This document shows positions 14,096 through 36,576 of a stretch of DNA of 64,000 nt, piece after piece. The translations under genes and the position numbers were made by a program. The DNA is from Selaginella moellendorffii (taxonomy: Eukaryota; Plantae; Lycopodiophyta), in the NCBI RefSeq assembly GCF_000143415.4, contig NW_003314316.1, positions 936,669-1,000,668 of the forward strand, given 5' to 3'. The notes beneath the pieces are model-generated. The model was not told the DNA's origin and ran no database searches. It saw only the letters and a program-made list of their open reading frames with translations. Position 1 is the first letter of the stretch; each line of letters opens with the position of its first letter.

Positions 14096-14227
<132 letters not shown>

Positions 14228-14366
14228 TAATATTAGCGTAGTAGATTTTGGTAGCCGTCGGATTGGTTTCAATCCGGACCACTCGCTCCTGTATATAAGC
14301 TAGGGTTTTTGGGCTAATTGATATGCACATTTCTGTATTCCCTTTATATATTCCATGCACTCACAT

Positions 14367-14382
14367 TGGTGGAGATGAGGGG
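14367..14382 (+). promoter_or_regulatory. Primer-binding site complementary to tRNA-Ala 3' end
   Basis: TGGTGGAGATGAGGGG directly after the 5' LTR. It is complementary to ...CCCCGCATCTCCACCA of plant tRNA-Ala with one mismatch. Confidence 0.8.
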
Positions 14383-14599
14383 CACCTTTGATTGTCCTTG
14401 GGGAGTGCTTGGATTTGGGATTTCGGTTTAAATCTAGCTTTTGCATCGTCTAGATCTAGCTTTTTCCATTTTCTTTCTTTTGTTCTTTCCTTTCAGGATT
14501 TTGGTTTCGATCTAGCTTTTTGCATTGTCTAGATCTACCATTTCTTTCCAGCTTTTTTGTCATTTCTCTTCTTTTGCTCTTTCTTTTTCGTTCATCTTC

Positions 14600-15538
14600 A
14601 TGGCCGATCCGCAATCTCCTCCTTTGACTCTAGAGCAGCAGTTGGTTCAATTGCTTGATGCTATGCGCTTGCAATTGAACAACCAAACTCAGTTGATGGC
14701 GGCGTTCACGGCACATGGTACAACTCCTCCTGCTCTTGGTGCCAATCCTCGCGTTCGGCCAGAGTTCTTTCGCGGGAATCCTGGGGATGATGTGTACCAT
14801 TGGTTCGATCACTTTACGGTGATTGCCACATATCATTCTTGGGATGATGCTCGACGGTTGCGTGAGTTTCCCACGTGTTTCCAAGGGACGGCATTGCAGT
14901 GGTACAATGGTTTGAGCGCAACTACTCGTGGGGATTGGAGTGTTCTCCCGGACGTCTTCAAACGCGCCTTCGGACATGCCGATGATTGTGATGATGCTTT
15001 CCAACAATTGCATCGTCTTCGCCAAGGGCTATCGGAGTCGGTGATGCAATTTGGCGTTCGTTTCCGAAGTCTTTTGCTTCGTGCGGAGCCAAATATGTCG
15101 GAGCGGATCAAGCTAGGAATGTTGTGGCCAGCACTTCGTCAAAATCTTGTCGGACTTGTGCATGCACTTGCTCCTGCCACCCTTGACGATGCTCTTCGCT
15201 TGGCACAACATTATGAGACGTCGCCTCTTCCACTTCTCGCTGCACGTCCTTCCACTCCACTTCCTATGGGTGATGGTCCTGTTCCAATGGAGGTTGATGC
15301 TGCTGCTACTCGAGTCCAAGGACAAGTGCGAGGACGTGGTCGTGGTCGTGGCCGTGATGTTCGCTGCTGGGCGTGTGATGAAGTTGGTCATACTTATCGG
15401 CGTTGCCATCGTTTTCCGGATTGGCGACCTCCATTTCCTGGGTGGAGACCTTGGCGTCAGCAACGTCCCCTGGGTGCTGCTACAGTGGAAGGTCTGGACA
15501 CCGAGATGCATCAGGGAAACGAGGAGTCGCGCGAGTAA
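14600..15538 (+). CDS. gag: Retrotransposon gag with CCHC zinc knuckle
   Basis: Open ORF with a retrotrans-gag core (LRQGLSESVMQF), the PVPMEVD motif and the knuckle CWACDEVGHTYRRC. Confidence 0.9.
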   Translation: MADPQSPPLTLEQQLVQLLDAMRLQLNNQTQLMAAFTAHGTTPPALGANPRVRPEFFRGNPGDDVYHWFDHFTVIATYHSWDDARRLREFPTCFQGTALQWYNGLSATTRGDWSVLPDVFKRAFGHADDCDDAFQQLHRLRQGLSESVMQFGVRFRSLLLRAEPNMSERIKLGMLWPALRQNLVGLVHALAPATLDDALRLAQHYETSPLPLLAARPSTPLPMGDGPVPMEVDAAATRVQGQVRGRGRGRGRDVRCWACDEVGHTYRRCHRFPDWRPPFPGWRPWRQQRPLGAATVEGLDTEMHQGNEESRE

Positions 15539-15577
15539 TGGAGGGACCTTGCGCGAATAAATCAGTGACCCCTCCAT
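15514..15577 (+). promoter_or_regulatory. -1 programmed ribosomal frameshift signal (G GGA AAC + H-type pseudoknot)
   Basis: Slippery heptamer at 15514-15520 in the gag frame, then a 6-nt spacer. Stem 1 is TCGCGCGAG/CTTGCGCGA and stem 2 is ATGGAGGG/CCCTCCAT. pol lies in the -1 frame. Confidence 0.85.
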
Positions 15578-18500
15578 CTTTCTTTCGGGAGTATCATCAA
15601 GGGGTTCACTCGGCACCAGTTCATCCAGTGTTTACTTTCCAAGCTCGTTTTTATAACAAGAAGTCTCCTATTATTCTCTCCGTGTTGGTTGATACAGGTT
15701 CGAGTTTATCTTCTATTGCTCGACCTGTTGCCACACGTTGTCGTCTACACTTGCGTCGTGCGGCAGAACCAGTTTTCATTCTTTATGGCAACGGCCGTAC
15801 ACATGCATGTGCACGGGATGAGGTGGACCTGGTTGTGCGTGTGGGCGATCTCGAGCTTGAGTTGCAGTCGTTGTGGGTGGTGCCGAGTCAAGCTTTTGAC
15901 CTCATTCTTGGTATGGATTGGTTGCAACGCAATCATGCCAAGTGTGATTTTGAGGCTTCTCCCCCTTGTCTCATACTTCCTTATGTTTCATCCATTCCTC
16001 TCACTTCCATACCTTTTCGTCCCTTTACTTCTACCTCTGCTTCCATTACTTTTGTTTCCCCACTCTTTCCTTCTGTGTTTCCATCTTGTTCTGCTTTTCC
16101 CTTTTCCGATCCCTCCGACGATCTTTGTGTTGCAGCAGTTGATCGGCTCATGAAGGAGTATTTTGATCTCTTTGAATTTGACCTATCGTCTGGGGCCAAG
16201 ATTGCCACACGTCATCCAATTCCCACCGGGGATGCTCGTCCAATCAAGGTTCCTGTTCGTCATCGGTCACCTAAGGAGATCAAAATTTTACGAGCAAACG
16301 TCAAGGAAATGTTGGAAAAGGGTGTTATTCGAAAGTCGCGGAGTCCTTGGGCATGTGAACCTCATCTTGTGACGAAGCTTGATGGGAGTATTCATTTCTG
16401 CATCGACTATCGTTCGTTAAAGGAAGTGACCATACCAGATGTGTATCCTCTTCCTCACACTGCTGATCACTTGGATCGTCTGGGGCGAAGTCGTTGGTTC
16501 ACTAAGCTAAATCTTGCTTCTGGGTATTGGTAAGTACCAATGGCCGAAGAAGATATTCCTAAGACTGCTTTTCGTACACCATTTGGTTTGTACGAGTTCT
16601 TGGTGATGCCGTTTGGTTTGAAAAATGCTCCAGCAACTTTCCAGCAGATGATGGACGAGGTTCTTTGCAATATGCCGGAGGTGACTGCTGACTTCATTGA
16701 TGATGTCTTGATCCACTCGGAGGGGACGTGGGAGGAGCACGTTCTTGATGTTTGTAAAGTGTTGGATTGGCTACATGACGTTGGTTTAAAGCTGAAGCGG
16801 TCGAAGTGCGTGTTTGGGTCCAAGGACACAACTTATCTTAGGTACCGTATTTCTCGTGAGGGTTTGCAAGTTGATCCTGACAAACTTGTGGCTGTTTTAA
16901 AGTTCCCTACTCCGAAGTGTGTGAATGATGTGCAGCGCTTTTTGGGTAAGGTGCAGTATCTTGGTCGTTTTGTGGATCATCTTTCCGATCGCACTACACC
17001 ATTGCGAGCGTTGCTGAAGTCATCAACGTCATCTTTCATCTGGTCTCCGGATTGTGAGCGGGCGTTTGTGGATCTCAAAGAGCTATTGACAACTCCTCCG
17101 GTTTTGGCATATCCTGACTACACTCGACCTTTTATTTTGCGCGTGGATGCTTCTGACATTGGTCTTGGAGGTGTGTTGATGCAAGAGAGTTCAAGTGTGC
17201 CTGGTCAGTGCCATCCCATTTCATACATAAGCCGTACATTACAACCAGCGGAGATGAACTACTCCACGACAGAGAAGGAGTGTTTAGCAGCAGTCTGGGG
17301 TTTCGAGAAACTTCATGCATATCTACATGGTTCTCGGACGTTACTTGAAGGTGACCATGCTGCTGTTACTTCATTATTGAAGCGGAAGAACCTGGTTGGT
17401 CGTACGGCTCGATGGGCTTTGAAGCTTCAGATATATGATTTCGATGTTGTTCATCGCCCAGGGAGTTCTATGGCTGATGCTGATGCCCTTTCTCGAGCTC
17501 CTCTTCCTTCTTCACTCACTTCTCATCATTCTGATGAACCTGTTGTTCCAGCATCTGTGGATTTTCTAGATGAGGATTCTGTGCCATCGGCGGTTGCTGC
17601 CCTTGACGTTCAGTGTCCACAGGGTGCAGAGCAAGATCTGCCTTCTCTTGAGGAGGTTCGCGAGGCTCAGAAGATTGAGCCGTGGATTCGAAGGCTTCGA
17701 GATGGGTTTGAGAATCCTGCATCATTTGCTGATGACTTGCCTTTTCGGCATTTATATTCTCAATATCGCCTTGAAGATGGCCTTCTTTATTTTGTGGGGA
17801 CGGATCCTGATGATCATTTACGATTGGTGGTACCTTCAGTGTTTATTCCGCGGTTTCTCCATGCTTACCATGATTCTCCTGTTCTAGGTGGGCATATGGG
17901 ACACCGTCGTGTCACCGAGAAGCTGCGCAGGTCTTTCTATTGGCCGGAGATGCGACGTGATATTATCCGGTATATGCGTAGCTGCGTTTGGTGCCAAGCT
18001 CGTAATACTCCCCCTTGTGCTGCGGAAGGACGGTTGGAGTCAATTGCAGTTTCCCGTCTGTTTGAGTTGGTGGTGTTTGATTTTATGGGACCTTTTCCAC
18101 GATCGACTGCTGGCAATGAGTATGTTACTATTGCTTCTGACTACTTGACTCGTTGGGTGGAAGTTGGTGCTCTTGCTAGTGCCTCTGCAACTGCTGTTGG
18201 ATACTTCCTCCTCAATCAAGTGGTGTTCCAGCATTCTTGTCCAGAGCGGATTCTTTCGGATAATGGTCCTGCATTTATGGCTGAGGTATTTCATGTTTTG
18301 ACATCTCGGTTGGGGATACGCCACACTTTTACGAGTGCTTATCATCCATAATCAGACGGTCTGGTGGAACGGCTCGTTCGGACATTCAAAGGGATGATTT
18401 CGAAGTATGTGAACTTTCAGCATTCGGATTGGGATGGTTATTTGCCGTCTCTTCAATATGCCTATGTCACAGGGGTGCAGAGTTCTGTTGGTGCTTCACC

Positions 18501-19002
18501 ATATAAACTTTTATATGGTCATGATCCAATATTACCAACAGAGTTGGGTTTACCTTCGCGATTGCCACGAGCTCCTGATGCTAGGTCATGGGATCAGTAT
18601 TTGACAAGCATTCTTCCACTTGTCCGAGCAGAGTCTGCTGAACACTTAGGCCGCGTACAAGTGGGACAACAACGGTGCTACAACTCCTATCATCGTCCAT
18701 TTGCGGAGTACAAAGTGGATGATTTGGTGTTAGTCTGTTTTCCCCATCTTACGGTATGTGGTTTATCTAAGGGGCTCCTTGCGCAGTGGAAAGGACCGTA
18801 TCGGGTGTTGCGGCAAGTTGGACCGCAAGTTTATGAGGTTCGGCATGACGTTCAGCAGGCCAATCCTCCGGAGATTGTGCATGTGCAGCGGTTAAAACGC
18901 TTCATACAAAGGGATCAGGAACAGTTAATACCGTCTACAGATCCGCCGATGCCTCCTCCTGACGTTCCTCCAGATCCCGGCCCATCTACAAGAGAACCCT
19001 GA
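15520..19002 (+). pseudogene. pol: pol (protease, RT, RNase H, integrase) with two in-frame TAA stops
   Basis: VDTGSS protease, FCIDYR/MPFGLKNAPATFQ/FIDD RT, VDASD RNase H, HHCC and SDNG integrase. Stops at 16531 and 18349 fall at normally Gln positions (SGYW*V, YHP*SDG). Confidence 0.92.
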
Positions 19003-19759
19003 CGGCCTTCCATTATTCCGAGAGGAGGGGATGATGTGAGGGCCAAGTGTACGGTTACGATGCCGTATACTAATATTAATGTAGTGGATTTTGGTAGCCG
19101 TCGGATTGGTTTCAATCCGGACCACTCGCTCCTGTATATAAGCTAGGGTTTTTGGGTTAATTGATATGCACATTTCTGTATTCCCTTTCCATATTCCATG
19201 CACTCATATAATTAATTTTTTATAATGTTTGTTGGGCTGGTTATGATTCATAGTGGTTGAATCAATTGAACTTTACTTATTATATAGTCAACCACTCTTA
19301 GAATTTTATTGATCCCATGACTAAAATTCATATAAATCATATTGAATTGATATGGAATGCAGTGAAAAGATCCCTTCCTTGCTATGATACAATAAAAGGA
19401 TTATACAACTTTTACTTTCAAAAATATATTTGGCGAAAAATATATTTTGAAATAAAAGAAACTACATTTAATATTTATATAGTCATATTAAGATTCATAA
19501 TCAGGATAATGCTTTATAGTAGAATAAATAGTATAATTGATTTTGTACTTTTAAATACTTAAAAATAATTAACATTAATATATTAGAAGAGGTGATATAA
19601 ATCCAAATAAGCAAACCGGGTGCTGTGTTATGCATTCTAACCCAGCAGAACTGATTCGATCTGCGACGCATCCGCAATCGCCAGGATCGCCACCGCCGCC
19701 TTCCCAGTAGCGCAAAGGCTAAAAGGTTTCTTGCACTACACCCAGGTCGCCAAGATCCG

Positions 19760-21172: not shown

Positions 21173-22035
21173 TTATTCTAGGCTTTCAAAGAACCTTTTC
21201 CATCCGACATAAACGCCCTCTACAATGAGTGCCGTGAGATCTGCGGGGTCGCAGGATAATCTAGCCCTCTCAAAGCACCTCGAGTAGACTTCCTTCTCCA
21301 CGAACGGCGGCTCCACCCCACTCGACTTATCCACAAACAAAATATTGGGAGCCAAGATGGTGATGCTTCTCAGTACGTGCGCCAGCATTATCCTTCCCGT
21401 CCTTCCGTTGCCATCCTCAAAGGGATGGATGGACTCGTACTCCCAGAAGAAGCGCCCGGCAAACTTGACAAGGCGCTCCACCCGCTCCAAACCTCTGGGC
21501 ATCGCAAAGATGTCCCGCAGCTCCTTGTTGGATCGATTCATCAGCGCGATGAGGGCGCTCTTGATCTTGTCCGGCTCCAGGAAGTAGTGCTTGTGACCAT
21601 CAATTGTGTACATGTACACTCGCTCACCTCGCATCCTTCCAGCGATCTCGGGATCCACAGTCTCGAGCATGCACTTGTGGGACTCGAGCAGCTTCTTGGT
21701 GCCCAGCCCGGGCATCTCTCGCTCGGTGGCGGACGCCGGGAACCAAGCTCGCAATGCCCGGTGGAGGCAAGAGACATGCTCCAGCCGGTCATCGTCCTGT
21801 TTCCAGCCGCCTTCCTCCTCTTGCAAAGCTCCATTCGCGATGGCCCGCTGCGTCTCTTCCAGCGTCTCAAACCCCTCGCCCTCGATGTGGTTGACTTGGT
21901 AGAGAAACTCCGCCATAGCCTTGCCCAGGCTTTCTTTTCGGGCGCTAGAGACTCGTACCGCCTGAGAAAGGCGTCAATCTCGACCACCATCTCCCTCACG
22001 CTCGGTCCACCACTCCTCCAAAACGGAAGCTCCAT
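21173..22035 (-). CDS. Intronless Fic/DOC (Fido) domain protein, putative AMPylase; either frameshifted near 21930 or starting at ATG 21916
   Basis: Canonical Fic motif HPFEDGNGRTGR and an upstream VNHIEG helix resembling the (S/T)xxxE(G/N) inhibitory motif. The upstream ORF MELPFWR... (22035) is out of frame by one base. Confidence 0.85.
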
Positions 22036-22091
22036 GTCACAAAGAAAGGGAACCCTAAACCGCTTATAAAGCGCAAAAAGGTGGCAGGCAC

Positions 22092-23302
22092 TTAAATATT
22101 CAAAGGATATTCTTTATACCCATAGTTAATGACAGCCTCTCCTCGCATTAAAACACGCATACTCTCCCAGTTGACTTGCAAATCAAGCTTACCACCACGC
22201 TCAGATACCTGGATTTGTTCAACATTAGCAATTGTTTCAGCATTATCCAGTGTTGTTCTTACTTGACAAGCCGAGAGCGTGTTCTTGAGCAGCTTCTTCG
22301 CCCAGTATGGAGCTAATGCGCAGTGAGCACTTCCACAAACTGGATCCTGCGAGCAAAACGCTTTTTACTAAAGAGAACGGAAAACTTCTCTTGTGGGAAG
22401 AGCACGATGTTGATGCTGTACCTCGTTGATGGCAAATCTCGGAGCAAAAAACCGCGAAACAAAATCATACGCTGAATGAGCGCTGGCTTTTGCTGTCACG
22501 AGAAGTCCAAAATCAGAGCAAGCCAAAACCTCGTCGAAGTCTGGTTTTAAGCCCCGTACGTGCTCTTCGGACGAGAGCTCTAGCTGGAAAAATAGCGACA
22601 AACAAACACATTGTTGATACGTATCAGGAAAGAAGCCTTTACTTGCAATGAGATCTCCCCGTCCAGACGTTGAAACGGCGACAACCGAGGCACCACCCAG
22701 AGTTTCAGTCAAGACGAAGTTGGCATTGTCGCAAGGAGAAGTTGTCATGACGGGAAAATCCAGCTCCACTTGGAAACTTTCACTGGACGACGTCCCGATC
22801 TTGCGAGCGGGCAACACTCCAGACTTTGTATTGAATCGAATCAAGTCGCCCTTCACAGCCTTTGTAGCAAAGAGGTAATAAGCCGAGGCCAAAGTTCCAT
22901 GACCGCATAGAGGCACCTATAGGAAAGAAAAGAGTTAAAAAGCACAATGATAAGCTTGATTTAAAGTTACCTCGCATCGAGGAGAAAACCAACGAAGCTC
23001 ATAGTCGAAAGGGGAAATCTCTTCCTCGCTGCTGTTCTTCACAAGGAACGCTGTCTGGGAGACATTGAGCTCCGTCGCTACGCGCTGCATCGACATGGGA
23101 TCAGCTTCACAGGAGAGAACGCAAACCGCCGCTGGATTCCCTCTCAGACCCTCGCCAGTGAATGCATCCACCTGATCAGAGAGAGAGAGGGAGAGAGGAG
23201 AAGGAAGAAGAGGAGATAATCCACCGAAATTTCGATCGAGCGGTAGCTTACCATCACGCATTGGTTGCCGCTGCCGAGATCGGAGGACTCCGCGGGCGCC
23301 AT
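22092..23302 (-). CDS. PhzC/PhzF-like phenazine-biosynthesis/diaminopimelate epimerase-fold protein, ~7 exons
   Basis: VDAFTGEGLRGNPAAVC, ELNVSQTAFL, LRWFSPRCE|VPLCGHGTLASA, FVSRFFAPRFAINE|DPVCGSAHCALAPYW, RGGELDL. Confidence 0.88.
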
Positions 23303-23837
23303 AGCTAGATCGACAAGAAATTCAAAGAACTTGGAGAAAGAAATTAGGGCAGAATCATTCTTATCCCTCCTTTTTGACTTTTTTTCACTGTAGAGATAAA
23401 AGAGTTAAAGCAGATTTATTCTTTTGCCCCTTTGCCCTTTCCTTTCACTTGAAAAGCTTTCGCACCGGACAAAACGACAGCGCAGCTGGAGCGTATCTTA
23501 TCGTATCCAAACCGTATGCTGGAAGAACATACGCTTTTGCACAGCAGCCACTCAAAGCCTCTCCTTCGCCAGACCTTCCTCATCTCAATCCGAGAAAACT
23601 AGGAAAAATTCCACTGCCATCACATTTCCTCGTTGATCCTAGCACAGATCCGAGAGAACTACGAAGAAACTGGAGAAAGAACTCCCAAATTCCTCCAGAT
23701 CTCTCATCCGAGAGAAGGAAGCACACGATTGTGCACGAAAGAATAGGAGTCTTTTAGATGTACAGGCGAAAATTCGGTTCTTCCATCGATGGAAGAACTT
23801 AAAATTCTTGATCGATCGATCGATCGCAATGAGCTAC

Positions 23838-24615
23838 TCACGAGCACAAGCTTGATCCCTGGAGAACATCCGTGACAATCGCGTAGGCCGAGCGAGGAGG
23901 GGGCGAGCTGGGTCGCAGAGCCACGCCCGGTGGATCCAAATGGCTCGTCCCAAATCCAAACGCGTGAAGCCCATCCGGGTGATGGACGCTCGCTTGGCGA
24001 TGCAATCGCTGCAGCTGGCGGCCGAGCTCCGACGCTTGCAAGCGAAGGAGCTGGTTGTCATGGCTGATCTGCGAGAACTGCTGCGATGCCACGCTCAGCT
24101 TGCCAAGAATGTGGCTGTTCTGCGCTCGCAGATCCAGCAGCTGGGATCGCAGCTCCTCCATATGCTGCTGCTTCCTCAGCCTCGATCGACGCGCGGACTC
24201 GCGGTTGGAAAGCATTCGCTTTTGCTTCTTGTCGTCCACGCCCAGGAGCTGCTGGTCCTCTTCCGAGGTGGAGGTCGACGGAGGAACAGAGTGATCCAGA
24301 GCTGGAAGAGCCGGACCGGGAGCGAAATCCCTCTCTGGGCCTGGAACATTGATCACTCTCGATCAGAGCTTGTAAAAACAGTGGATCTTTCTTACCCCCG
24401 GCTGGGAATTTGGGGACGCGATCGACGCTCTTCCAATTCGCTGCGCCGAGATCTTGGATCTGACCTAGGCTCTGCTGCTGGACCTCCAATCTCCACAATG
24501 GGGCAAACAGATCATCCACCGACGGCGTCCTCGGCAGCGCCGATTCCTTGCTAGATCCAGCGCCGCCGCCGTAGATCCCCGCAACACCAGCCTCGGCATC
24601 GTCCCAAGCGCCCAT
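23838..24615 (-). CDS. bZIP transcription factor (C/S1-like), 2 exons (24615-24395, 24341-23838)
   Basis: Basic region KKQKRMLSNRESARRSRLRKQQH followed by a leucine zipper. A GT-AG intron joins exon 1 (LPRTPSVDDLF) in frame. Confidence 0.88.
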
Positions 24616-25118
24616 TCTTCTTGCGTGAAAATGTGGACAAAAGCGAAGATTAGGGTTCTTGTAGCTAGCGCTTTTGTGGACAGGTGGACGTCGCGCAGCC
24701 GTCGGTTAATGGACGGCTGTAGAATGGATGGGGCTGTCGTGGTTGCGTGGCCGAATCGCGGCCGTTGGAGTGGTGGCGTACTCAACTGACAGCACTTATC
24801 CACTCCTCACCTTTTGGATCGTCCATGTGGAATGGATCCAATTAATTTCTCTGGATACTTGTTGCCTTGCTATGGATTCTTATTAAATTTTATTTAATCG
24901 CGTTCGCCGTGGTTTCGTCTATAGATGGGATTCCTTTAGCAAGCCCGCCAGCCAATGGGAGGCATTTTTTACGGGGAACAAAAAAGATGCCCTTCGCCGG
25001 CATTTGCGTCGCGATAGTTACTCAAAGTCTTAGTCAATAGTAGGCAACAACGATTTTTAAACCAACGAAGATTCCATGGCAAAGATACCTGCAAAAAAAC
25101 GTGTAGAATTCAACCTTT

Positions 25119-27020
25119 TCAATTCCACTGGCATATGCTTTCCACTTGGAAAGAACTGACGACTTTTGTTTTTATGCTTGAGGACAAAATGTAGGCAGCT
25201 CCATGCCTTGGGTCAATGCTTATCAGCTTGTCTACAGCTAATCTAGCATAATCTATCGCATCTTCATGGTTTTTGCAAGATCCAAGAAAGCACACCCAGT
25301 CTACAGTGTCTGGAACAAAGGGCATTGTGTTTATAAGGCCCAGAGCATCATCTAGATATCCAGATCTTCCAAGCAAATCGATCATACAAGCATAGTGTTG
25401 TTTCGTTGGATTGTGAAGATAATCTTGTCTCATAGAAGAAAAGCAGCATTTCCCAGTGTAGAGCTCTCCATCGTGACTGCAAGTGATTAGCATCGAAACA
25501 AAGCAAGTCTCTTCAGGATCAATCACTAGCTTCATCTCCAAAAACATTCTTTTGGCATCTTCCGTATGCCCTTTGTGGGCATATGCGGCAAGCATAGCAC
25601 TACAAAGAACTGCGTCTTGCAGTGGAATCCCATCAAACATCCTTTTCGCTAATCTAATTTCTCCATTTTGAGTAAACCCACCTAGCATACAGGTCCAAGA
25701 CACTAGATTTTGCTGTGGCAACTCATCAAAAACTCGCTTTGCTGAAAATACATGCCCGCATTGGGCATATGCCGTAAGCATACATGTTGCCGATATTATA
25801 TTCCTCTGGGGCATCTGGTTGTGCATCTGCTCGGCCTCGTCGACGTGGCCGTTCAAAGCATATGCTGCCACGATGGCATTCCACGTCACCAGATTCCTTT
25901 GGGGCATCTCATCAAACAGCCGCTTTGCTTTCTCCACATGCCCCTTGTGGGCATACCCAGTCAGCAGGGAGTTCCACGTAACCACGTCGTGGCGTCGCAT
26001 GGACTCAAAGATTCGCTCGGCATCTCCTAGATGCCCACTCTGGGCATATGCCGCGACAATAGCGTTGCAGGATACTAGGGACTTCTCTGGCATTGTGTGA
26101 AAAAGATTCTTTGCTCGGTCCAAATGCCCGTGCTGGATATACGCTGCCACCATGGAGTTCCACGTCACTGTGTTCCAGCTTGGCATGGAATCAAACATTG
26201 ACTTTGCGCGGAAAAGATGTCCATTTTGGGCATATACCGCAATGGCGGCATTCCAAAGAACACCGTCCCACTCGGGCACCTGTACGATTATGAGACCCAT
26301 TTCTTCGATTTGGCCACTGCTTCCGTAGGATTTAAGCATTGATGCCCAAGAGAAGAGATCTCTCTCCGGCATTGTATCAAATGTGTTCTTGGCCTCCTCC
26401 AAATGCCCATTTCGCGAGAATGCCGCGAGGATCGAATTCCAGGAGACGATGTCTTGGGTGGGCATGATCTCGAAAATGTGCCTGGATCGATCGAGCTCTC
26501 CGTTCTTGCAAGCGCAATCCAGGAAGGAATTCCAGGAGACGAGGTCCCAGGCGGGCATCTCGGTGAAGAAGCGCTGTGCTCGATCGATCTGGCCGCTGTG
26601 AGCGTAGGCCGCGAGCATCGAGTTCCAGGAGATGAGATCGCGCTGCGGCATTGCAGAGAAGACTTCGATGGACTCCTCGATTTGCCCCTTGCTGGAGAAT
26701 GCCGCCAGCATCGCGTTGTGCGAGGGGAGGAATGGATTGGGCATCTCGCGGAAGACAATTCGCGCCTCTTCCACGAACCCATTCCGGGAGTAGGCATGGA
26801 GCATGAGCATCCAGGAGAAATCATCGCGCCGCGCGAGGGAGTCGAAGATCTCTCGGGCATGATCCACCCGTCCAAATCTACCGTACACCTCGAGCAGCTT
26901 GTTGGAGACGAATCCCTCGCGCGGAAGATCGAGACGAGATTGGAGGAGAGAATGCGCTCTCTTCACATCGTTGATCGATCGGCAAGATTGGATGAGCTCT
27001 ACGCATTCCTGGTGTCTCAT
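25119..27020 (-). CDS. PLS-class pentatricopeptide repeat protein (tandem ~31-aa S/SS motifs, E domain, no DYW)
   Basis: Repeated SWNSMLAAYA..G....A...F..MP..D motifs, then HYACMIDLLGRSG...MPFVPD...W..FLGSC (E domain). Intronless. Confidence 0.93.
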   Translation of the reverse strand: MRHQECVELIQSCRSINDVKRAHSLLQSRLDLPREGFVSNKLLEVYGRFGRVDHAREIFDSLARRDDFSWMLMLHAYSRNGFVEEARIVFREMPNPFLPSHNAMLAAFSSKGQIEESIEVFSAMPQRDLISWNSMLAAYAHSGQIDRAQRFFTEMPAWDLVSWNSFLDCACKNGELDRSRHIFEIMPTQDIVSWNSILAAFSRNGHLEEAKNTFDTMPERDLFSWASMLKSYGSSGQIEEMGLIIVQVPEWDGVLWNAAIAVYAQNGHLFRAKSMFDSMPSWNTVTWNSMVAAYIQHGHLDRAKNLFHTMPEKSLVSCNAIVAAYAQSGHLGDAERIFESMRRHDVVTWNSLLTGYAHKGHVEKAKRLFDEMPQRNLVTWNAIVAAYALNGHVDEAEQMHNQMPQRNIISATCMLTAYAQCGHVFSAKRVFDELPQQNLVSWTCMLGGFTQNGEIRLAKRMFDGIPLQDAVLCSAMLAAYAHKGHTEDAKRMFLEMKLVIDPEETCFVSMLITCSHDGELYTGKCCFSSMRQDYLHNPTKQHYACMIDLLGRSGYLDDALGLINTMPFVPDTVDWVCFLGSCKNHEDAIDYARLAVDKLISIDPRHGAAYILSSSIKTKVVSSFQVESICQWN

Positions 27021-27060
27021 CCAAGAACACGAAAAGTATTATCGTTAATCTAACCTTAAC

Positions 27061-27515
27061 TTTCAAAGCAAGGGGATGTAGCTCAAATGGTAGAGCGATA
27101 TAGCCATAGGTACCCATTTTTTCTTCCTTTAAGATTTTTCTAATCCTCTATTATTTAATTTTATGTTGAACTATTCTTAATTTTCAAAGCTCAAATTAGA
27201 GCGATGGTCGACGATACCTCCCATTTCCATTTTCTTTTTCCTTTAAGATTTTTATAATCATCTATTATTTTATGTTAATCTATTCTTAATTTTCAAGCAA
27301 GGGGATGTAGCTCAAATGGTAGAGCGATGGTCGACGATAGACATAGGTAGGAGGATCGATACCTCCCATCTCCATTTTCTTTTTCCTTTAAGATTTTCTA
27401 ATCCTCTATTATTTTATGTTAGTCTATTCTTAATTTTCAAGCAGCTCAAATGGTAGAGCAATGTCGGACGATCGGCGTAGGTAGGAGGATCGATACCTCC
27501 CATCTCCATTTTTTT
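27061..27515 (+). repeat. Tandem array of four tRNA-Ala-derived units (~115-145 bp each: tRNA-like body, T-rich terminator, AT-rich spacer)
   Basis: Repeated spacer cctttaagatttt.taatc.tctattattttatgtt..tctattcttaattttcaa separates bodies at 27072-27116 (deleted), 27188-27229 (deleted), 27301-27374 (full) and 27443-27508 (5'-truncated). Confidence 0.9.
27301..27374 (+). ncRNA. tRNA-Ala-like RNA with non-canonical anticodon arm (full-length copy)
   Basis: Acceptor GGGGATG/CATCTCC+A (G3:U70), D-arm GCTC-AAATGGTA-GAGC, 18-nt arm ATGGTCGACGATAGACAT, variable loop AGGTA, T-arm GGAGG-ATCGATA-CCTCC. CAA upstream and TTTT downstream. Confidence 0.75.
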
Positions 27516-27542
27516 AGGTTTTAGGGCTACTTGTTATCGCCA

Positions 27543-30500
27543 ATGGCTTTGGCGCTCGGCTATGGCGCCATGCCATTGCCGAGGCGCTGCTGCTTCAATG
27601 CCGCCTCTTCTTCTTTCAATCGGTGAGCTGAGATGTCAATCTCTTGTGTAGCACTGAGCATTTGAGCTGAATCGGATTGCGCATTTCATGGATTGAGCGT
27701 TCGTTGCGCAGGGTTTTGATCGTGAGAGCTGCTGCGCGAATGAGCGCTGCGCAAGAGACTCTCGAGGTGCTGGAATGGAAGAGACTGTCCAGTGCTGTTT
27801 CGAGCTTTGCTAGCACTGCGCTGGGAAGGGAACGCCTCCAGGTTCCTTGAAGGAAAATTTCTAGCTTTTGCTGATACTTTGAGGCGTGCGTTCTCTCCAG
27901 GTTCTCGAACTGCCCAGCACTGAGAGTGCCAGTGAGATGCTTCTCTCGGAGACTCATGGCGCATTGGAGTTTGAAGCTCTTCGTGGGAATTCTTGTGACC
28001 TTGGAGCAATCCAAACAGATGTGGTAACACAAAGTTTGATACGATTGCTGTAGGAATTATTTTTCTTCTTCCCTGCAGGTTAAAGTTGGATTGACTCGTG
28101 CTAGCAAAGGAGTTGCTCTATCGGGCAAAGAAGCTGCTGCCCTTGCCGCTATGCTTGAAGCAGCTCGTTCTCTCAGGCATGCTGCTTTCTCTTCGTTTCA
28201 AGAAAACAAGGAGAAACAAGAGATTTTGCGTCCTATCTATGATATGGTAAGCATGGACACACTTTTCTACAAGCTAACTGCGACGTTTTGCTTGTCAGCT
28301 TTGCTCCATTGATGCCGACGTTGATACTACAAAGACGATCTGGAACGCTGTTAACGACGATGGTTCGGTGAAAGATTCAGCGGTATAATGATTGAACTAG
28401 TGTTCCTTGCTGCTGACGTTTATATTGCAGAGCCCCGAGCTACGAACTGCGAGAATGGAACAAGCCTCGTGCGAGAGAAAGGTACTACTGATTGAATGCT
28501 TTTGGATACCGTGGAGAGGATGTATGATTTATAACAGCTTCAAGAGCTTATGACGAGGATTGTCATCGACAGGCTTGCTGGCGATCCTAATGGTCAGGTT
28601 TGTTTATTACGCTGTCTTCAGAAGGTGAAAATCATGTTGAATGTTATCAGGTTGCCAGCCTTGATGGAAGGCTTTGCGTGGCAGTTTCTACTGAAAACAA
28701 TTCGAAAGTGCCGGGTCTACTCTTGCAAAGGTAATCTTGTCTTGCAACGACTGCTTTCCATATCACATCTTTTGCAGTTCTGCTGGAGGATTAGTTTCCT
28801 ACGTAGAACCTTCTGCAGCTGTTGCATTAAACAACAGTTTGTCGCAGGCTAGAGCAGATGCTGCTCAAGCTGAATATCGTGTTCTGGATGATCTCACGAC
28901 GAAGGTCTTCCTTTCTTACATCTCCGCTGTTGCTATAGCTTCCTGAGTCTGGTTTTGTGGATACTTCAGTTGCGACCTTTTCTCAGCAATTTTTCTTTCA
29001 CATTGGATATTGTTGCAGATTTTGATGTGGTAAGCTTCACTGCCTTGTTATCCTTAACTTGTTGGATCTGTGTAGGTGCTGGCTCGTGGAAGATACAGCT
29101 CTTCTATTGGAGCGACCAGACCTTCATTTGTACATGCGGAAAGAGACGAATCGGAGAGTACATTGGACGAGTTTCTAGTTCTTTTGGAAGGGGCCAGACA
29201 TCCTCTGTTACTAGAACAACACCGTGGAAACTTACGTGACGCGAAAGCAAAACTGAACACGAAACGGAAGGTTGACATATTTGCCTTTTATTTTGCACAC
29301 TCACCACAAAGCTTCTCCAGATTCTTAACAGGATGAAGTCACGGGCTTTCACCAGTGCTCAGGACTATCAAGCGGCAGAGGAAGCTATTACCAAAGCTGA
29401 AGAAGAAGTAATCATCGATTTCAGATGCTGTCTCTAACTTTTACATTCAATCAGCTAGGTTGCGGAGCTGGAGGCCTCCGTACCCGTTCCCATTGACTTC
29501 CTTATCAAGAGAGAAACAAAAGTTGTCACCATTACTGGACCGAATACGGGAGGCAAGACTGCTGCTATCAAAACGCTTGGATTAGCTGTGCTAATGGCCA
29601 GAGCAGGTAAGCTTCAGTGTTTATGCCTATTGTTCCTTAGAAAAATTCCTTTTCGCAGGACTTTACGTTTTAGCCAAAGAACCAGCTCTAATTCCATGGG
29701 TTGACAGAGTTCTTGCTGATATAGGAGATCAACAATCGTTAAGCCAGTCTTTATCAACGTTCTCCGGACATTTGCTCAGAATCAAGGTGTGTATGGGAAG
29801 GCGGCCAGAGTTTTCGAGCTTACACATTTTTGCAGCGCATCAAAGAGGAGTCAACGAGCTCTTCTCTAGTTCTTTTGGACGAGGTCGGTTTGCTGCAACA
29901 TTTAGCTAGTGCTGGATAAATGTTCGAAGGTTTTGCAGGTTGGAACTGGTACAGACTTTGTGGAAGGCGCGGCTTTAGGAATGGCAATGCTGGAGTCATT
30001 TGCAGCTGGTAGTCTTCTCACTTTGGCCACAACACATCATGGAGAACTCAAGATGCTCAAATATAGGCAAGTGCTATTCAACAGGCATTTTATAAGCGCC
30101 TCAGTTGTGGTTTTTACTTTTGTTACAGTGATGATAGATTCGAGAATGCATCAGTAGAGTTTGACGAAGAGAAGCTCAAACCAACTTACCGACTTCTTTG
30201 GGGGATTCCAGGTGAATAGTAGTAACTCATGGAGCGTGTAGTATCGTACTGTTTGGTTTGCAGGACGTTCGAATGCTCTAAACATTGCAGCACGGCTGGG
30301 CCTGCCCGAAGAAATCATAATGGAGGCCCGAAGCTTGCACGGAGCAGCCAATGCCGAGTTAAACGAGGTATGCTCCCAGAGTTTGGAGGTGACAATCCGC
30401 AAGTTTTACGTGTAAACTCCAGGTGATCATGACGCTGGAACAAGCTCGGCAGAAGTTTGAGCACGATTTGTCCAAGAGCCAGAAACTCTTGGGGTAAGCA

Positions 30501-30693
30501 AGCACGCTTTCCTGATCGATCAACCTGGTATCTTGGTGTTTGCAGGGAAACCAGAAGGCATTATCGTGCACTCTCGATTGCTCAGAAAGAGATTGAGGAG
30601 TACAGAAAGACGGCTGCGTTGGATGCCAACGATCAGCTCGCAGTGGCTGAAGCAGCGGCACGAAGCGACCTTAACAAACTCTATCATTCGTAA
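27543..30693 (+). CDS. MUTS2: MutS2-family ATPase (probably plastid-targeted), ~20 exons, no C-terminal Smr domain visible
   Basis: [22 protein letters not shown], Walker [36 protein letters not shown]|[34 protein letters not shown]|RSNALNIA. Transit-peptide-like N-terminus. Confidence 0.92.
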
Positions 30694-30776
30694 CGCTCCC
30701 TGGAAATGGAATTCCAAGCGAAGAACACTTCCTATTATCCTTGTTTAGACTAATCTAATTCTAATTGTCAAAGCAA

Positions 30777-30850
30777 GGGGATGTAGCTCAAATGGTAGAG
30801 CGATGTACGACGATCGGCATAGGTAGGAGGATCGATACCTCCCATCTCCA
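30777..30850 (+). ncRNA. tRNA-Ala-like RNA with non-canonical anticodon arm (second full-length, dispersed copy)
   Basis: Identical to 27301-27374 except the arm ATGTACGACGATCGGCAT. Shares a homologous ~25-bp upstream flank ending CAAAGCAA, and has a T8 terminator 4 nt downstream. Confidence 0.75.
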
Positions 30851-30990
30851 AATGTTTTTTTTAGTGCCTACCATCCACAGATTTCTCCATTACTATCTCA
30901 AAAAAAGAAGGAAAAAACTATTTAACTCAAAGAAAGAAAAAAAAAAACTAGGCTTTATCAAGAGTGATCGAATGAACGAACGAAGGAATA

Positions 30991-31746
30991 TCAATAGCTC
31001 CAAGTTTTCTCCATCATCAGCTTTGGCGGCTTGGAGCTCTCTCTCGCGAGTGGAATGTCCGCATAGATCTTGAAAGGCCCAGTTCCATCCTTGCTCGCTC
31101 TCGACCAGTCCACGGCAATGCTCTTGTCCAGCCCCTTGTACGTCGCCTTGATGCTATCCTCCTTGCTCACCTTCCTCGACACTCCAAAATCCCACGTCTT
31201 GGTTCCCAGGTGGAATGCCGGCTCCAAGCAAGCCCCAGATCGATCGTGCACGAACGAGTACCTCACTCTCCCCGCCTGGGACGCGAAATCGTAGCTCAGG
31301 CCGAGCTTGTTCTTGGGATCCAGCGTGAGCGCCGCCTCGACCGCGGTGGAGGATGGATCGCTCTGGTGGTGGGTGTAGCAGAGATTGAGCGTCCTGGAGC
31401 CCATGACACTGGCGGTGCTGGAGAAGTGGAACTTTGGGGAGCGCGAGCCCAGATCGTAGTCGAAGAGGAAGGAGCCGGGCTTCTCGACGCCGAGGGAGAG
31501 GCCGTCGAGGGATGGGCCGCTGGCGAAGGTGTCGTCGGTGCAAGAGGCGCGGAGGAGCAAATCGCCCGCCTCGACCGTGAGGACGCCCACCGCGGACCTG
31601 GATGCCGCATCGATTCGCGTCTTGAAACACGCCCGTGGGAAGCGAATGCCGCCGCCGCCGCCTTCACCGCCATCGCTGGTGTCGGTGCCGCTGCTCGCGG
31701 CCTTTCCCCACGCCATTCTCTCGCTCCCTAAAGCCCTAGAGCGCAT
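30991..31746 (-). CDS. OEP24: Chloroplast outer envelope pore protein 24 (start may be ATG 31716)
   Basis: AGDLLLRASCTDDTF.SGPSL.GLSLGVEKPGSF..DY, LNLCYTH, EPAF.L.TKTWDF.VSRKV...D.IKATY, GPFKI, PKL..EKTW.Y. Confidence 0.88.
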   Translation of the reverse strand: MRSRALGSERMAWGKAASSGTDTSDGGEGGGGGIRFPRACFKTRIDAASRSAVGVLTVEAGDLLLRASCTDDTFASGPSLDGLSLGVEKPGSFLFDYDLGSRSPKFHFSSTASVMGSRTLNLCYTHHQSDPSSTAVEAALTLDPKNKLGLSYDFASQAGRVRYSFVHDRSGACLEPAFHLGTKTWDFGVSRKVSKEDSIKATYKGLDKSIAVDWSRASKDGTGPFKIYADIPLARESSKPPKLMMEKTWSY

Positions 31747-34427
31747 GCCTAGGGTTTAAACATTCATTCGTAACGAATATCCGATTGGTTCGCTGAATAT
31801 TCTCAGATTATTAGTTTTATCCAAGATGGGACACTGGATTTCCTCCTGGATTTCTCCGGCCAAGTTCGCCATCCTCCCCGTCCTCCCACTAGGGTTTCCT
31901 CCTGGATCAACGCTTGCAGTAAGCATTGAAAGAGCGAGAGAGAAATTTTCTCCCTCTTCACATCCTGGCCTCGTTCTCCACAAGAACTATTTAGTCCCAT
32001 CATAAATCTCTTTAGAGAGATCTCCTTGGCAAAGTTATCAGGGAGAAATGTGACCTAATAACTTACTAATGTGATTGATTGATACAACCATGAAACATGA
32101 GAAGGATTACAAGGATGTGATTGCCAGTTTGGACTTAACCAGGTAATCAATCTTGAGGGACTAAGGAAGAAAGAAGAGATAAAGCAGAATTGCAAGGCTT
32201 TTGAAAAGTTTTTGATGGCCTTTGTAGTAATTTGTTCAGTTGGACAAATTTCTTTATGAGTAGTCACTTTTAAATGACCTCTTCCTTTCAAGTTTTGAAT
32301 TTAAAAAATTAAAAAGGATCCAAAACACAATAGAAACTCCAAACTTTATAGCTATTGGCAAATGAAGTATACAAATTAAAAGCAAGTATAAAGTTTTTAA
32401 GAAACTTCATGAGGATGGATAATTATTTTAACTTGTACAACCAGTATTACATAAAGATCAGAAAGTTAGTTGATATATATTGCTTTTTGAAGCAATATAA
32501 CTTTTAAAAGTAGTCTATGTTAAATAACAAATAACAAATTACTTGTTGTAGTATGTAAATTAATTAAATAAAAAAAAATTTAGTTGATTTTATATTCTCT
32601 TTTATTACCATATGATGTAACATTTTATTTAATATATATCTCACCTTATTCAGAACTAATTTTAATTAAGGATAAAAAATAAAATAATACATCCTTTTAA
32701 TTTATCTCACTGTTGCAATAAAAAAGAATAGTAGTGCCATAAAAAATATTTTTATTGTTCTTAAAACTATTTTAAAAATTCCTATGTATTTTAATAAGTG
32801 GACTTGGGATTCAAAGACATAATTAATTGCTAATCAAGATTTTTTTTTTTTTTTTTTTGATAAATAATGTAGGAGATGAAACTCTTATGGCAACCAAAAA
32901 GGAGGATTTAGTATTTAAATGTTGGAAGTATAAATTTTAGAATGTAAAATTCACATAATAAACCCTATTAATTACCATTTCTTTAATAACATTTAGTTCT
33001 TTATGAACTTTATTTGTAAAAGTATTTATTCTAAAACAATAAAAAATTATTTAATTTATCATATAGGTATTTTTATCAATTTATTGGATATATAATTGTA
33101 TTATTTTTTTTTAACACTGGGTCACCAAAGTGAAATATTAGTTATAAATATTAAAAATAATAAATAATAACATAAATATTTGAAATATATATATTGTAGT
33201 TTAATTTTAATCAATCCTCTTTTAAATTTTTTATTATAGTATATTTATATCTTATATATTCACAACTTGAAATAATAAACAATAGAAATGATCATTTACA
33301 TTATAATAGTGTTTAGAAATAAATAAATAAATAATATTATAAAAATATAATACAATTAATTTACATTTAAATTGATTTGCTAGAAAGATATAATCAACTT
33401 TTAAGTCATTAAGTTTTTAATTTATTAAAAGACAATAGAGTATGTCCCACTTAGAATAAATTTCAAAGTAGTTATTTTTAAAAAAAATTTATTTAGAAGT
33501 GAAAAATTCAAGATAATAACTTTTAAATAAGTAAAAATTTTAAATTTTAAATAGATTTTTATTTATAGTTAATTAATTTAGTGAAAACTTATTTAATTTA
33601 GTTTTGAACAAAAGAGTGTAAATTGCTTGATATTTTAAAATAGTGGAATAAATTTTATTGCATGTATCCAAAATGCTATTTTATAATTAATATAGTTATA
33701 AATATTTCAACATTCAATTTCAGTATCTAAAACTTTAACCGAACCAAGTTATCATTTTTAAATTTGTGGTAAAGATAAATGGTATGACATAAGTTTTTCA
33801 TAAATATTTTAATTTTTTTAACTTAGCTAAATTAGAACACAAATAAATAATATATATCTAGTTTTTAGGAAAACATGAAATTTTTTAGATATTCTGCTAA
33901 ATTATATTACACTATATGTGCTCAAAATATAGGAATAAATATATTATTTGGCTGCTTATATATAGAAATGGATGGATTAAATTCAATTCTAAATAGACAG
34001 TACATATGTTATAGTACTATAATTAATGTATTATTAAGGTAGAGTAATACAACTCTCTCTCTCTCTCTCTGACTCTATATATATGTATGTATGTATGTAT
34101 TTAAAAACTTGATATCATCCTCCCCTCTAGAAGATGAAAAAAGTGATAAAAATAAGTCAGATGGAATATTTAGAGCTTCTGCTAAGTGATTATAAATTAC
34201 TATAAGAATTTGAAGCTCCCACAAAACCATTAACAAAGTTTTTGACAACCATGATTGAAATAAAATCTAAAGCTATGGCATAAGCATCAGTTGACTATAA
34301 ATCTCAATGAATTAATTGTAATTTCATATGCAACTGCTAAATGTTTAAACCAACCTCAAATCCATAATTTTAAATAAAAGCAAAAACTTTAAGAACTGCT
34401 GTAGTCCATGAAATATCATTGCAATAG

Positions 34428-34739
34428 ATGATACATCCCGTGTTTAAGTCTTCTTGCTAATAATCTTCCAAGACCACTGTTAACTCAAACTTATGACCAT
34501 AAGTAGAATTTGCCTCTTTGTCTTTATCTAGCACTATATATAAAAGATTGGACTCATTCCACTTGTCCACCACATCCTTTTTAATGATACATCCCGTGTT
34601 TAAGTCTTCTTGCTAATAATCTTCCAAGACCACTATTAACTCAAACTTATGACCATAAGTAAAATTTACCTCTTTGTCTTTATCTAGCACTATATATAAA
34701 AGATTGGACTCATTCCACTTGTCCACCACATCCTTTTTA
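34428..34739. repeat. 156-bp tandem duplication in an AT-rich intergenic/relic region
   Basis: Near-identical copies start at 34428 and 34584 (atgatacatcccgtgtttaagtcttc...cacatccttttta). Confidence 0.9.
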
Positions 34740-36576
34740 TCCCCTCTTTGAAGGAAGATTTTTTTTTAAGCACTAGCTCTGTTCAAATTCTCATCCTCAT
34801 TCTAAAGCCTCACTGTAAGCTTTTGAATTTGAACTTCTTGGGAAGTCACCTAGCTCAGTACTATTCAAACCCAAGGATGCTTAACCTCAAATATCCCAAA
34901 ACCCTTAATCAATTAAAAAAAAAGGTGCACTTTTGTTCATGGGCCCTTTCCCTTTATATTTGAACCCCTATGGATCGTCTCTTGAGTCGTTCCCTTTAGT
35001 TGATTACACTCACTTCACTATCACATTTGTATAGCCTCACTACATTAGGGTTAGATGTTTCATTTGAATTTATTATATTCATCCTTATCCCACAATCCAT
35101 GTCATTTACATTTGCTCCACTATTATATTTATTCATCATTACTCTATCATCAAGCCAGACACCCATCTGCCCCCTTTACCCTCTCCTTTGAAAAAAACAT
35201 TTTTTGAAGCATCAGGGCAAAGAGGAGAAAGAAATAGTGTAGAAGAAGAAAAAATGGATAAAAAAGCATTGGAAAAGGAATTTACAACAATTAACAATGC
35301 AAAAATAGGGAAATCAAAGAAAGATATATGCTTAAAGCTTGGAAAATAAAGAACTTCATATCATAAAATACTTCTATTACCACAATATAAACAAAAGATT
35401 TACACTGCTCAACCTCCTCAACACATAACTCAATTATTGAGACAAGAAAATTAATAATAATATTCACACTCTCAAGGGAATACATAAATTCCTCAACATT
35501 AATGGAAAAATAAAAGCTCTCAATATCATTAACAAATGAGGACACACACTCAACCCAAAACTTTGGCTAAAGTGACTCAACCTTTGGAATAAAAAAATAT
35601 TCAACACCAAAATTGATCAAAGACTTTGCCAACAAAATAAAAACAAAAATCTCACCTTCATGCATATATTTAACATTTAGGCTAAGAAATAAAAAAATGT
35701 TGGAAAAAACAGAAGGTAAAGATAAAGGATCAAATGGTAAATTGAAAGATTGATACCTACCTTATGAAATCTCTATTTCATCTCTAAAGCTATCTCCATA
35801 ATAATTAGACTTGTCAAAACGATTTGGAATCCACCCAAGCTCATACATATCATCTTCCTATAAATTTGATCCTTGAACATTCTCTAAGAACCAAATTACA
35901 TCATCCATAGCTCACTAATTGATATCACAATCATGAGAGATGGCATAATACCAAGAACAAAATAAGTCATATAATCACATCTCACAAAAGTTAGAGACTG
36001 TAACACACAAAGGATGGGTGCAATATCAACATGATCATACCTCACTGCACCAAAAACTTGATCTAACAGAGCACCATTAGCAGCCTTAAGTGACATACTC
36101 CTTGATTGATGACAACATAGTTGGTAAGAGACAAGAATGCAATGAAGATTAAAAAAAAAAAGTAGATCTAAACAAGCAATAACTAGTGTTCTAGATCTTG
36201 CAAAAAGTTGATACAAATCTAGATTTAAAAGAGAATGAAGAAATAAGAATAAAAAACACAATTTCAAACACTAGAGCAAAACATTACCAAAAAAACTTTG
36301 CTTTTCAAGGACAAATTATAATGCCTTTCATTTCCACCAATGTAAATGATATAAGAATAAATATATTAATTAGAGTTTAAATTTTTACTTATATACAATA
36401 ATGGATGGATTAAATTCCATTCAAAATAGACAGTCTATATGTTATAGTATTATAATTAGCATATTACTTAACCAGTGTAATATATGTATCTACAAACCTT
36501 ACAACATTTTATTTTAATTTAATTTGAATTTAGTAGTCAGTAAGAATTTTCTTTACTGGAAGGTGACATACAATTC

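Follow-up and report, generated by a model that had tools for sequence, protein, structure and literature searches.

Two intact, non-decoding tRNA-Ala-like genes among decaying duplicates at a MutS2-like locus of Selaginella moellendorffii

The 64-kb window analyzed here, a stretch of 64,000 nucleotides from Selaginella moellendorffii scaffold GL377620.1, contains five units derived from tRNA-Ala, all on the + strand and grouped around a MutS2-like gene (coordinates are those of the window unless stated otherwise). Two of the units, c3 (27301-27374) and c5 (30777-30850), are intact 74-nt tRNA-Ala-like genes on the + strand that carry an unrelated middle arm in place of the anticodon arm. We give roughly even odds to the reading, drawn from the sequence, that c3 and c5 are maintained, non-decoding tRNA-like genes of RNA polymerase III (Pol III) that persist among dying duplicates. 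An earlier description made from the letters of the window, the sequence-only reading, had placed five copies in this region with c3 and c5 at the full 74 nt, and both a reading of the region and pattern searches bear this out.

Anatomy of the intact units and their tRNA-Ala origin

Scored against the Rfam tRNA model RF00005, c3 and c5 reach 46.1 and 46.4 bits (gathering score 29), but the model skips 12 nt in the middle arm, which it treats as a local insertion. ARAGORN at default settings calls no tRNA in the whole 64-kb window. At an 80% threshold, the program draws c3 and c5 as cloverleaves having a 5-bp stem with one mismatch and an 8-nt loop, in which position 33 is G and the "anticodon" consists of four nucleotides, acga. 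The cloverleaf is the minimum free energy fold in ViennaRNA for all three variants of the arm, with ensemble frequencies of 45-61%. Across the predicted folds the acceptor, D and T arms are constant, while the middle hairpin is weak and differs in register from one variant to the next. Where a canonical anticodon arm has a 5-bp stem and a 7-nt loop with U33, a purine at position 37 and an NGC anticodon, the arm found here is 18 nt long. With this length and a predicted 8-nt loop that lacks U33, c3 and c5 are unable to decode. Two other identities were considered and rejected. An 18-nt arm is too short to consist of a 17-nt arm plus an intron, and ARAGORN gives nothing sensible when introns are allowed. 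ARAGORN finds no transfer-messenger RNA (tmRNA), and the Rfam cyano_tmRNA model scores 11.2 bits against 70, matching the T arm only.

The remainder of the unit can be traced to a plant gene. Its first 25 nt are identical to the 5' fragment of wheat tRNA-Ala-UGC, and its AGGTA variable loop, followed by ATCG, is as in wheat tRNA-Ala-AGC (PMC8722339, Table 1). Because of these matches the unit is taken, on sequence grounds, to be a plant cytosolic tRNA-Ala body joined to a foreign 18-nt middle arm. A literature search with the exact unit sequence returned wheat tRNA-Ala fragments only. The 5' strand of the T-stem reads GGAGG in the unit and CGGGG in wheat tRNA-Ala-AGC (same table). These two paired T-stem changes are the only differences between the body and angiosperm tRNA-Ala, and no unpaired change occurs in 56 nt. 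The sequence-only reading had called the two pairs compensatory. Both changes are indeed paired, yet they are measured against an angiosperm reference, and an indirect clue to the Selaginella sequence lies within the window itself. The primer-binding site (PBS) TGGTGGAGATGAGGGG of a long terminal repeat (LTR) retrotransposon, at 14367, implies a primer tRNA-Ala ending in CCCCU-CAUCUCCA-CCA, unlike the CCUCC of the unit; this suggests that the canonical Selaginella tRNA-Ala has the 3' end CCCCU-CAUCUCCA.

The alanine identity set, G3:U70, A73 and G2:C71, is present in c3 and c5 and in three units of the second haplotype described below (u3, u4 and u5). A and B boxes, an AT-rich upstream region with CAA and a poly(T) tract can be read in the intact units; c3 is preceded by CAA and followed by TTTTCTTTTT, and a T8 run starts 5 nt downstream of c5. 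A and B boxes, AT-rich/CAA upstream sequence and poly(T) are the core cis-elements of plant Pol III genes (PMC13578239). As far as can be read from the sequence, c3 and c5 keep every feature for Pol III transcription and for recognition by alanyl-tRNA synthetase (AlaRS), and the tRNA-Ala body that the sequence-only reading described, with its non-decoding arm, stands.

Body and arm: the case for constraint

Comparison of c3 with c5 carries the argument for maintenance. The two bodies show 0 differences in 56 positions, and the arms differ at 4 of 18. The upstream flanks have 4 mismatches and 4 gaps in 38 aligned positions, and even the array spacer closest to the c5 flank is about 11% diverged (manual count from the alignment). 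Fisher tests return p = 0.003 for body against arm and p = 0.0002 for body against arm plus flank with gaps included. The contrast extends beyond the promoter elements, as c3 and c5 also agree at all 33 body sites that belong to neither the A nor the B box (P(0/33) of 0.03-0.001 at 10-18% divergence). Three types of arm are found: A in c3 (ATGGTCGACGATAGACAT), B' in c5 (ATGTACGACGATCGGCAT) and B in c4 (ATGTCGGACGATCGGCGT), the last array unit (27444-27508, + strand). A tree of the three places 7 events on 18 arm sites and 2 on 56 body sites (p = 0.0005). Purifying selection in at least two copies would give this pattern if it acted on the tRNA body together with the three basal pairs of the middle arm (AUG/CAU, or CGU in arm B), the distal arm probably drifting at about the neutral rate.

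The arm looks unconstrained, not variable by design. Only the basal 3 bp (AUG/CAU) are kept, and the distal pairing shifts register between variants. No pair is altered on both sides across the variants, so compensatory change was not seen in the arm, and 29-47 of 200 shuffled sequences fold as well as the hairpin (z-scores -0.5 to -1.1). The pairable stem noted by the sequence-only reading is reduced to its three basal pairs, its distal part showing neither covariation nor excess stability. The invariant GACGAT that the sequence-only reading pointed out lies within chance: an untouched run of six sites has a chance expectation of 37% (P = 0.37). The further claim, that substitutions are concentrated in the arm, is correct for c3, c4 and c5, in which 7 fall in the 18-nt arm and 1 (G26A) elsewhere; it does not extend to the array units of the second haplotype, whose bodies carry A5T, G1A, G3A, G10A, G18T and an A>G change in the T loop.

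A history compatible with these observations would begin with the loss of a usable anticodon arm from a cytosolic tRNA-Ala gene. Local copying of this gene together with its AT-rich flank, through unequal crossing-over and one short segmental duplication, would then have left an unstable array on the upstream side of MutS2 and one copy on the downstream side; most array units would have become pseudogenes, with c3 and c5 staying intact. For the two intact genes we infer transcription, processing, charging and any cellular role from the features listed above. TFIIIC would bind the A and B boxes, the AT-rich/CAA region would set initiation and the T-run would terminate the transcript, which is predicted to fold with normal acceptor, D and T arms. 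RNase P, RNase Z and CCA addition require no more than an intact stack of acceptor and T arm. Because these arms appear normal, RNase P, RNase Z and the CCA-adding enzyme could process the transcript. G3:U70 and A73 suffice for AlaRS, which ignores the anticodon, and the enzyme could charge the transcript by means of these nucleotides. The 8-nt loop without U33 would read no codon. Selection would hold the tRNA body and, with it, the three basal pairs of the middle arm, and leave the distal 12 nt to drift.

The cluster in two haplotypes

Units c1 to c4 form a tandem array in the gap between a PPR gene and the MutS2-like gene, and c5 lies alone, 84 nt past the MutS2 stop. The array spans 27040-27515 (+ strand) and consists of four head-to-tail repeat units; an intact repeat measures about 134-145 bp and comprises an AT-rich spacer and a tRNA-like unit. 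On one side is the intron-less PPR gene (25119-27020, - strand, 633 aa), which diverges from the array and has its ATG at 27020; an exact match of its protein places the window on GL377620.1 of assembly GCA_000143415.2, an accession given as Selaginella moellendorffii v1.0 in Table S1 of PMC10886601. On the other is the MutS2-like gene (27543-30693, + strand), a called gene of 700 aa with small introns, whose putative identity comes from its Pfam label, MutS_V. The array occupies the whole 523-bp gap between these divergent genes, and therefore both RNA polymerase II (Pol II) promoters must lie inside the tRNA-like repeats; only 34 nt separate the end of c4 from the MutS2 ATG. Downstream, c5 sits between convergent genes, the MutS2-like gene and an OEP24-like gene (30991-31716, - strand, 241 aa). 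The last array unit and c5 also match outside the tRNA-like unit, over about 45 nt upstream and about 22 nt downstream, and because of this match MutS2 is bracketed by a direct repeat made up of spacer, tRNA-like unit and downstream flank (27040-27515 and 30721-30875). The tRNA-like units may also be carried at either end of MutS2 transcripts.

Three of the five units are damaged. In c1 (27072-27116, + strand) the 5' half is whole, but 8 nt are missing from the arm, and deletion has taken most of the T arm and the 3' strand of the acceptor; a T-run follows at 27117-27122. Unit c2 (27188-27229, + strand) has no 5' acceptor strand, lacks GG in the D loop, carries T in place of C71 and has a 22-nt deletion between two CGATA repeats. 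Unit c4 has lost its 5' acceptor strand and carries A in place of G26. Under R1, a covariance model built from full units, c1 scores 31 bits and c4 70 bits. The unit deletions stop at short direct repeats, CGATA...CGATA (27212-27216 and 27357-27361) or CAT...CAT, and the same is seen in u2 and u6 of the second haplotype. These repeat-ended deletions suggest that replication slippage lies behind the high deletion rate. A motif, CGAT(A/C)G, is common to the arm and the T loop.

The other haplotype, scaffold GL377616.1 (L002), was reached through a 98%-identical OEP24 allele (P0122). In searches for the locus in other species, the OEP24 protein matched only its own allele, and the PPR protein mainly brought up paralogues of no more than 37% identity. 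Its array has six units against four in GL377620.1, and the whole cluster seven against five. Unit u3 (L002 14696-14623) is identical to c3, and the c5 allele (L002 10939-10866) is identical to c5. The others are altered to varying degrees. Unit u1 carries A5T, and c1 has a 12-nt deletion beyond what is seen in u1. Unit u2 has G1A and G3A, the latter removing G3 of the alanine identity set, and shares the loss of GG from the D loop with c2, although its large deletion differs from that of c2. An extra full unit, u4, has G10A and the T-loop A>G change and scores 36 bits; u5, full and with arm B, has G18T and G26A; and u6 is a stub. The upstream flanks of u4 and u5 are identical (45/45) and their arms differ at 6 of 18 positions, a mosaic of flank and arm that is exactly what unequal crossing-over within the conserved body would produce. 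Differing numbers of units, and different deletions in matching units, show an unstable array in which most members are dying. The "family" proposed by the sequence-only reading is, in the DNA examined, a set of several related units in one local cluster, of five or seven members depending on the haplotype, most of which are decaying.

The haplotypes diverge by about 1.4% within MutS2, by about 1% in the surroundings of c5 and by about 4% across the damaged units and the spacers of the array (the last figure a manual count from the alignment). Over a longer comparison of window 21379-37500 with L002 it is likewise uneven, at about 0.7-1.4% in and around MutS2 and about 3% on the PPR side, with many indels throughout; identity falls to 85-89% over 34076-36428.

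The retrotransposon that supplied the PBS is a compact LTR element of about 5 kb (14223-19209), with LTRs at 14223-14366 and 19066-19209 that are 95% identical and a PBS complementary to the 3' end of tRNA-Ala. The closest relatives of its Pol open reading frame (16540-18348) in the protein collection are metazoan gypsy elements of the 17.6/412 type, at 35-40% identity. The reading frame also matches one Logan contig at 52% identity, without an LTR. No plant chromovirus is among the top hits, and no S. moellendorffii copies were found in the protein collection.

Alternative explanations and comparison with known systems

Several observations weigh against maintenance of c3 and c5. Over both haplotypes, 8 of 12 units carry damage or a mutation at conserved positions (G10, G18 and G3), and given these numbers the locus as a whole is not protected. 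Searches with R1 recover no further members in the rest of the 64-kb window or the rest of L002, and none in three other S. moellendorffii loci (69 kb), in which no tRNA of any kind is found; over about 150 kb of S. moellendorffii sequence beyond the cluster, no additional copy came to light. Metagenome scans with the whole unit and with the T arm plus acceptor produced 0 matches. The allelic identity of c3 and c5 is weak support and not significant, P(0/74) being 0.35-0.6 given the low local divergence between haplotypes (about 1% and 1.4%). Finally, the comparison of paralogues was post hoc, the locus having been chosen for this very pattern.

Much of this is what would be expected of a purely neutral relic, which we hold to be nearly as likely as the maintenance of c3 and c5. 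A tRNA-Ala pseudogene with a broken arm would have been amplified by unequal crossing-over, and c3 and c5 would have no function. Their identical bodies would be due to chance, to differences in rate (the arm is CpG-rich, and the flanks, AT-rich and of low complexity, are prone to mutation and misalignment) or to short patches of gene conversion. Such a relic would readily explain the change from four to six array units with different deletions in orthologous units, the substitutions at G1, G3, A5, G10 and G18, and the u4/u5 mosaic with its signature of unequal crossing-over. It is equally at ease with an arm devoid of covariation or excess stability, with the lack of copies elsewhere in the sampled DNA and with an allelic identity that is not significant, and the PlantRNA 2.0 preprint reports tRNA-like sequences and pseudogenes as a common feature of plant genomes. 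It is less comfortable with a c3/c5 body that is unchanged at 56 sites next to an arm altered at 4 of 18 and a flank diverged by at least 10% (p of about 0.003-0.0002), or with a distance to angiosperm tRNA-Ala made up of two paired changes and no unpaired one. A conversion tract would need to skip the 18-nt arm twice. Transitions make up just 2 of the 7 arm changes, and CpG decay therefore fails to account for the divergence of the arm.

A role at the level of DNA is improbable. Here binding of TFIIIC and Pol III would be the reason for keeping the A and B boxes, and the sites would serve the closely spaced gene pairs (divergent PPR/MutS2 and convergent MutS2/OEP24) as boundary or promoter-proximal elements, with the RNA as a by-product. 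Units do occur on both sides of MutS2, and the array fills the divergent gap in which the Pol II promoters must lie. TFIIIC sites are established as barriers or insulators in yeast (work in the reference list of PMC13578239). However, the 33 conserved body sites outside the A and B boxes (P of 0.03-0.001) are not needed for TFIIIC binding alone.

A tRNA-derived mobile element, either a short interspersed nuclear element (SINE) or a small LTR element of the Helenus type, is a very remote prospect. The units are tRNA-related and present in several copies, and S. moellendorffii does possess a tRNA-bearing terminal-repeat retrotransposon in miniature (TRIM), Helenus-1_SMo (PMC10886601). The terminator nevertheless follows directly after position 74, and the copies agree in their flanks over about 45 nt upstream and about 22 nt downstream. 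There is no tRNA-unrelated body, tail, target-site duplication, TG..CA termini or PBS, and the sequence-only reading was right to argue from the shared flank against a simple SINE. The published Helenus-1_SMo LTR has a different tRNA-like core (GGGCAGG... GGTTCAATCC), acceptor stem and T arm. Its layout, a 120-bp LTR bounded by TG..CA and an 85-bp internal part with a PBS, is not that of the present units, which have a period of about 134-145 bp and no internal part. Elsewhere in the window, elsewhere in L002 and in the 69 kb of the three other loci, no copy turned up.

Least credible of all is a decoding tRNA, an Ala-charged frameshifter or mistranslator that would read quadruplets or misread Arg or Ser codons through an 8-membered loop: relaxed ARAGORN draws such a loop with its 4-nt acga and every variant has GACGAU as its six inner loop bases, but position 33 is G and not U, position 37 in the standard register is not a purine, the stem is mismatched in two of the three variants, its distal pairs change from one variant to another, as do the bases that close the loop, the invariant run is within chance, and a decoder inserting Ala would be toxic, yet the copies duplicate freely.

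Among described systems, the "tRNA-like" class of the PlantRNA 2.0 preprint comprises true pseudogenes and possibly divergent tRNAs of unknown function. Its members resemble the present units in being derived from tRNA, matching tRNA covariance models and not decoding; in c3 and c5, by contrast, the lesion is confined to the distal anticodon arm, and the rest is a perfect tRNA-Ala body with all Pol III signals. Tandem arrays of tRNA genes offer a second parallel, with gene and spacer repeated head to tail, unequal crossing-over and mutating copies (PMC7544208, PMC13578239). The present array differs in having four to six units, none of them decoding, and in forming the spacer between two protein genes in a gene-dense region. 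Two haplotypes of one individual display its turnover in progress, and even if c3 and c5 are not maintained, the locus is a clean example of the birth, shuffling and destruction of a tRNA gene cluster.

Rodent BC1 RNA and the ID elements show another fate of this tRNA: BC1 is a Pol III RNA whose 5' domain comes from tRNA-Ala and has lost tRNA function. A tRNA-Ala-derived sequence without tRNA function is common to both systems. BC1, however, has an A-rich and a unique 3' part and no cloverleaf, and it seeded a SINE family, none of which is seen here. The mascRNA of MALAT1 is cloverleaf-like with an abnormal anticodon arm, is processed by tRNA enzymes and does not decode. The tRNA-like RNA of Arabidopsis GUT15 is described in similar terms, as cloverleaf-like and non-decoding with an abnormal anticodon arm, and as processed by tRNA enzymes (PMC6152437). 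Both are cut from Pol II transcripts and have no autonomous transcription, whereas c3 and c5 are each equipped with a Pol III promoter and terminator. For c5, which lies in or just after the 3' region of MutS2, release from a read-through transcript may nonetheless apply.

Another parallel is bacterial. The tRNA-like domain of tmRNA has an Ala-type acceptor with G3:U70 and a T arm, has no functional anticodon arm and is charged by AlaRS. The same G3:U70 Ala acceptor, T arm and non-functional anticodon arm are found in c3 and c5, for which charging is a prediction, and the differences are the lack of an mRNA-like tag region and of pseudoknots and the setting in a nuclear eukaryotic 74-nt gene. 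One may speculate, and we regard it as doubtful, that c3 and c5 encode a maintained RNA that is made by Pol III, tailed with CCA, charged with Ala and never decodes, a nuclear eukaryotic counterpart of this domain. Its alanyl group, or its GGGG-headed 5' half, could serve in non-ribosomal donation of Ala, as a decoy for AlaRS/EF1A or a nuclease, or as a source of 5' tRNA-derived fragments (tRF-Ala). If c3 and c5 are expressed and selected, they would be a rare eukaryotic example and an entry to non-translational uses of the tRNA scaffold in plants. The anticodon plays no part in recognition by AlaRS, and a dead arm on a tRNA-Ala body is therefore the simplest means by which a cell could make a charged, non-decoding RNA.

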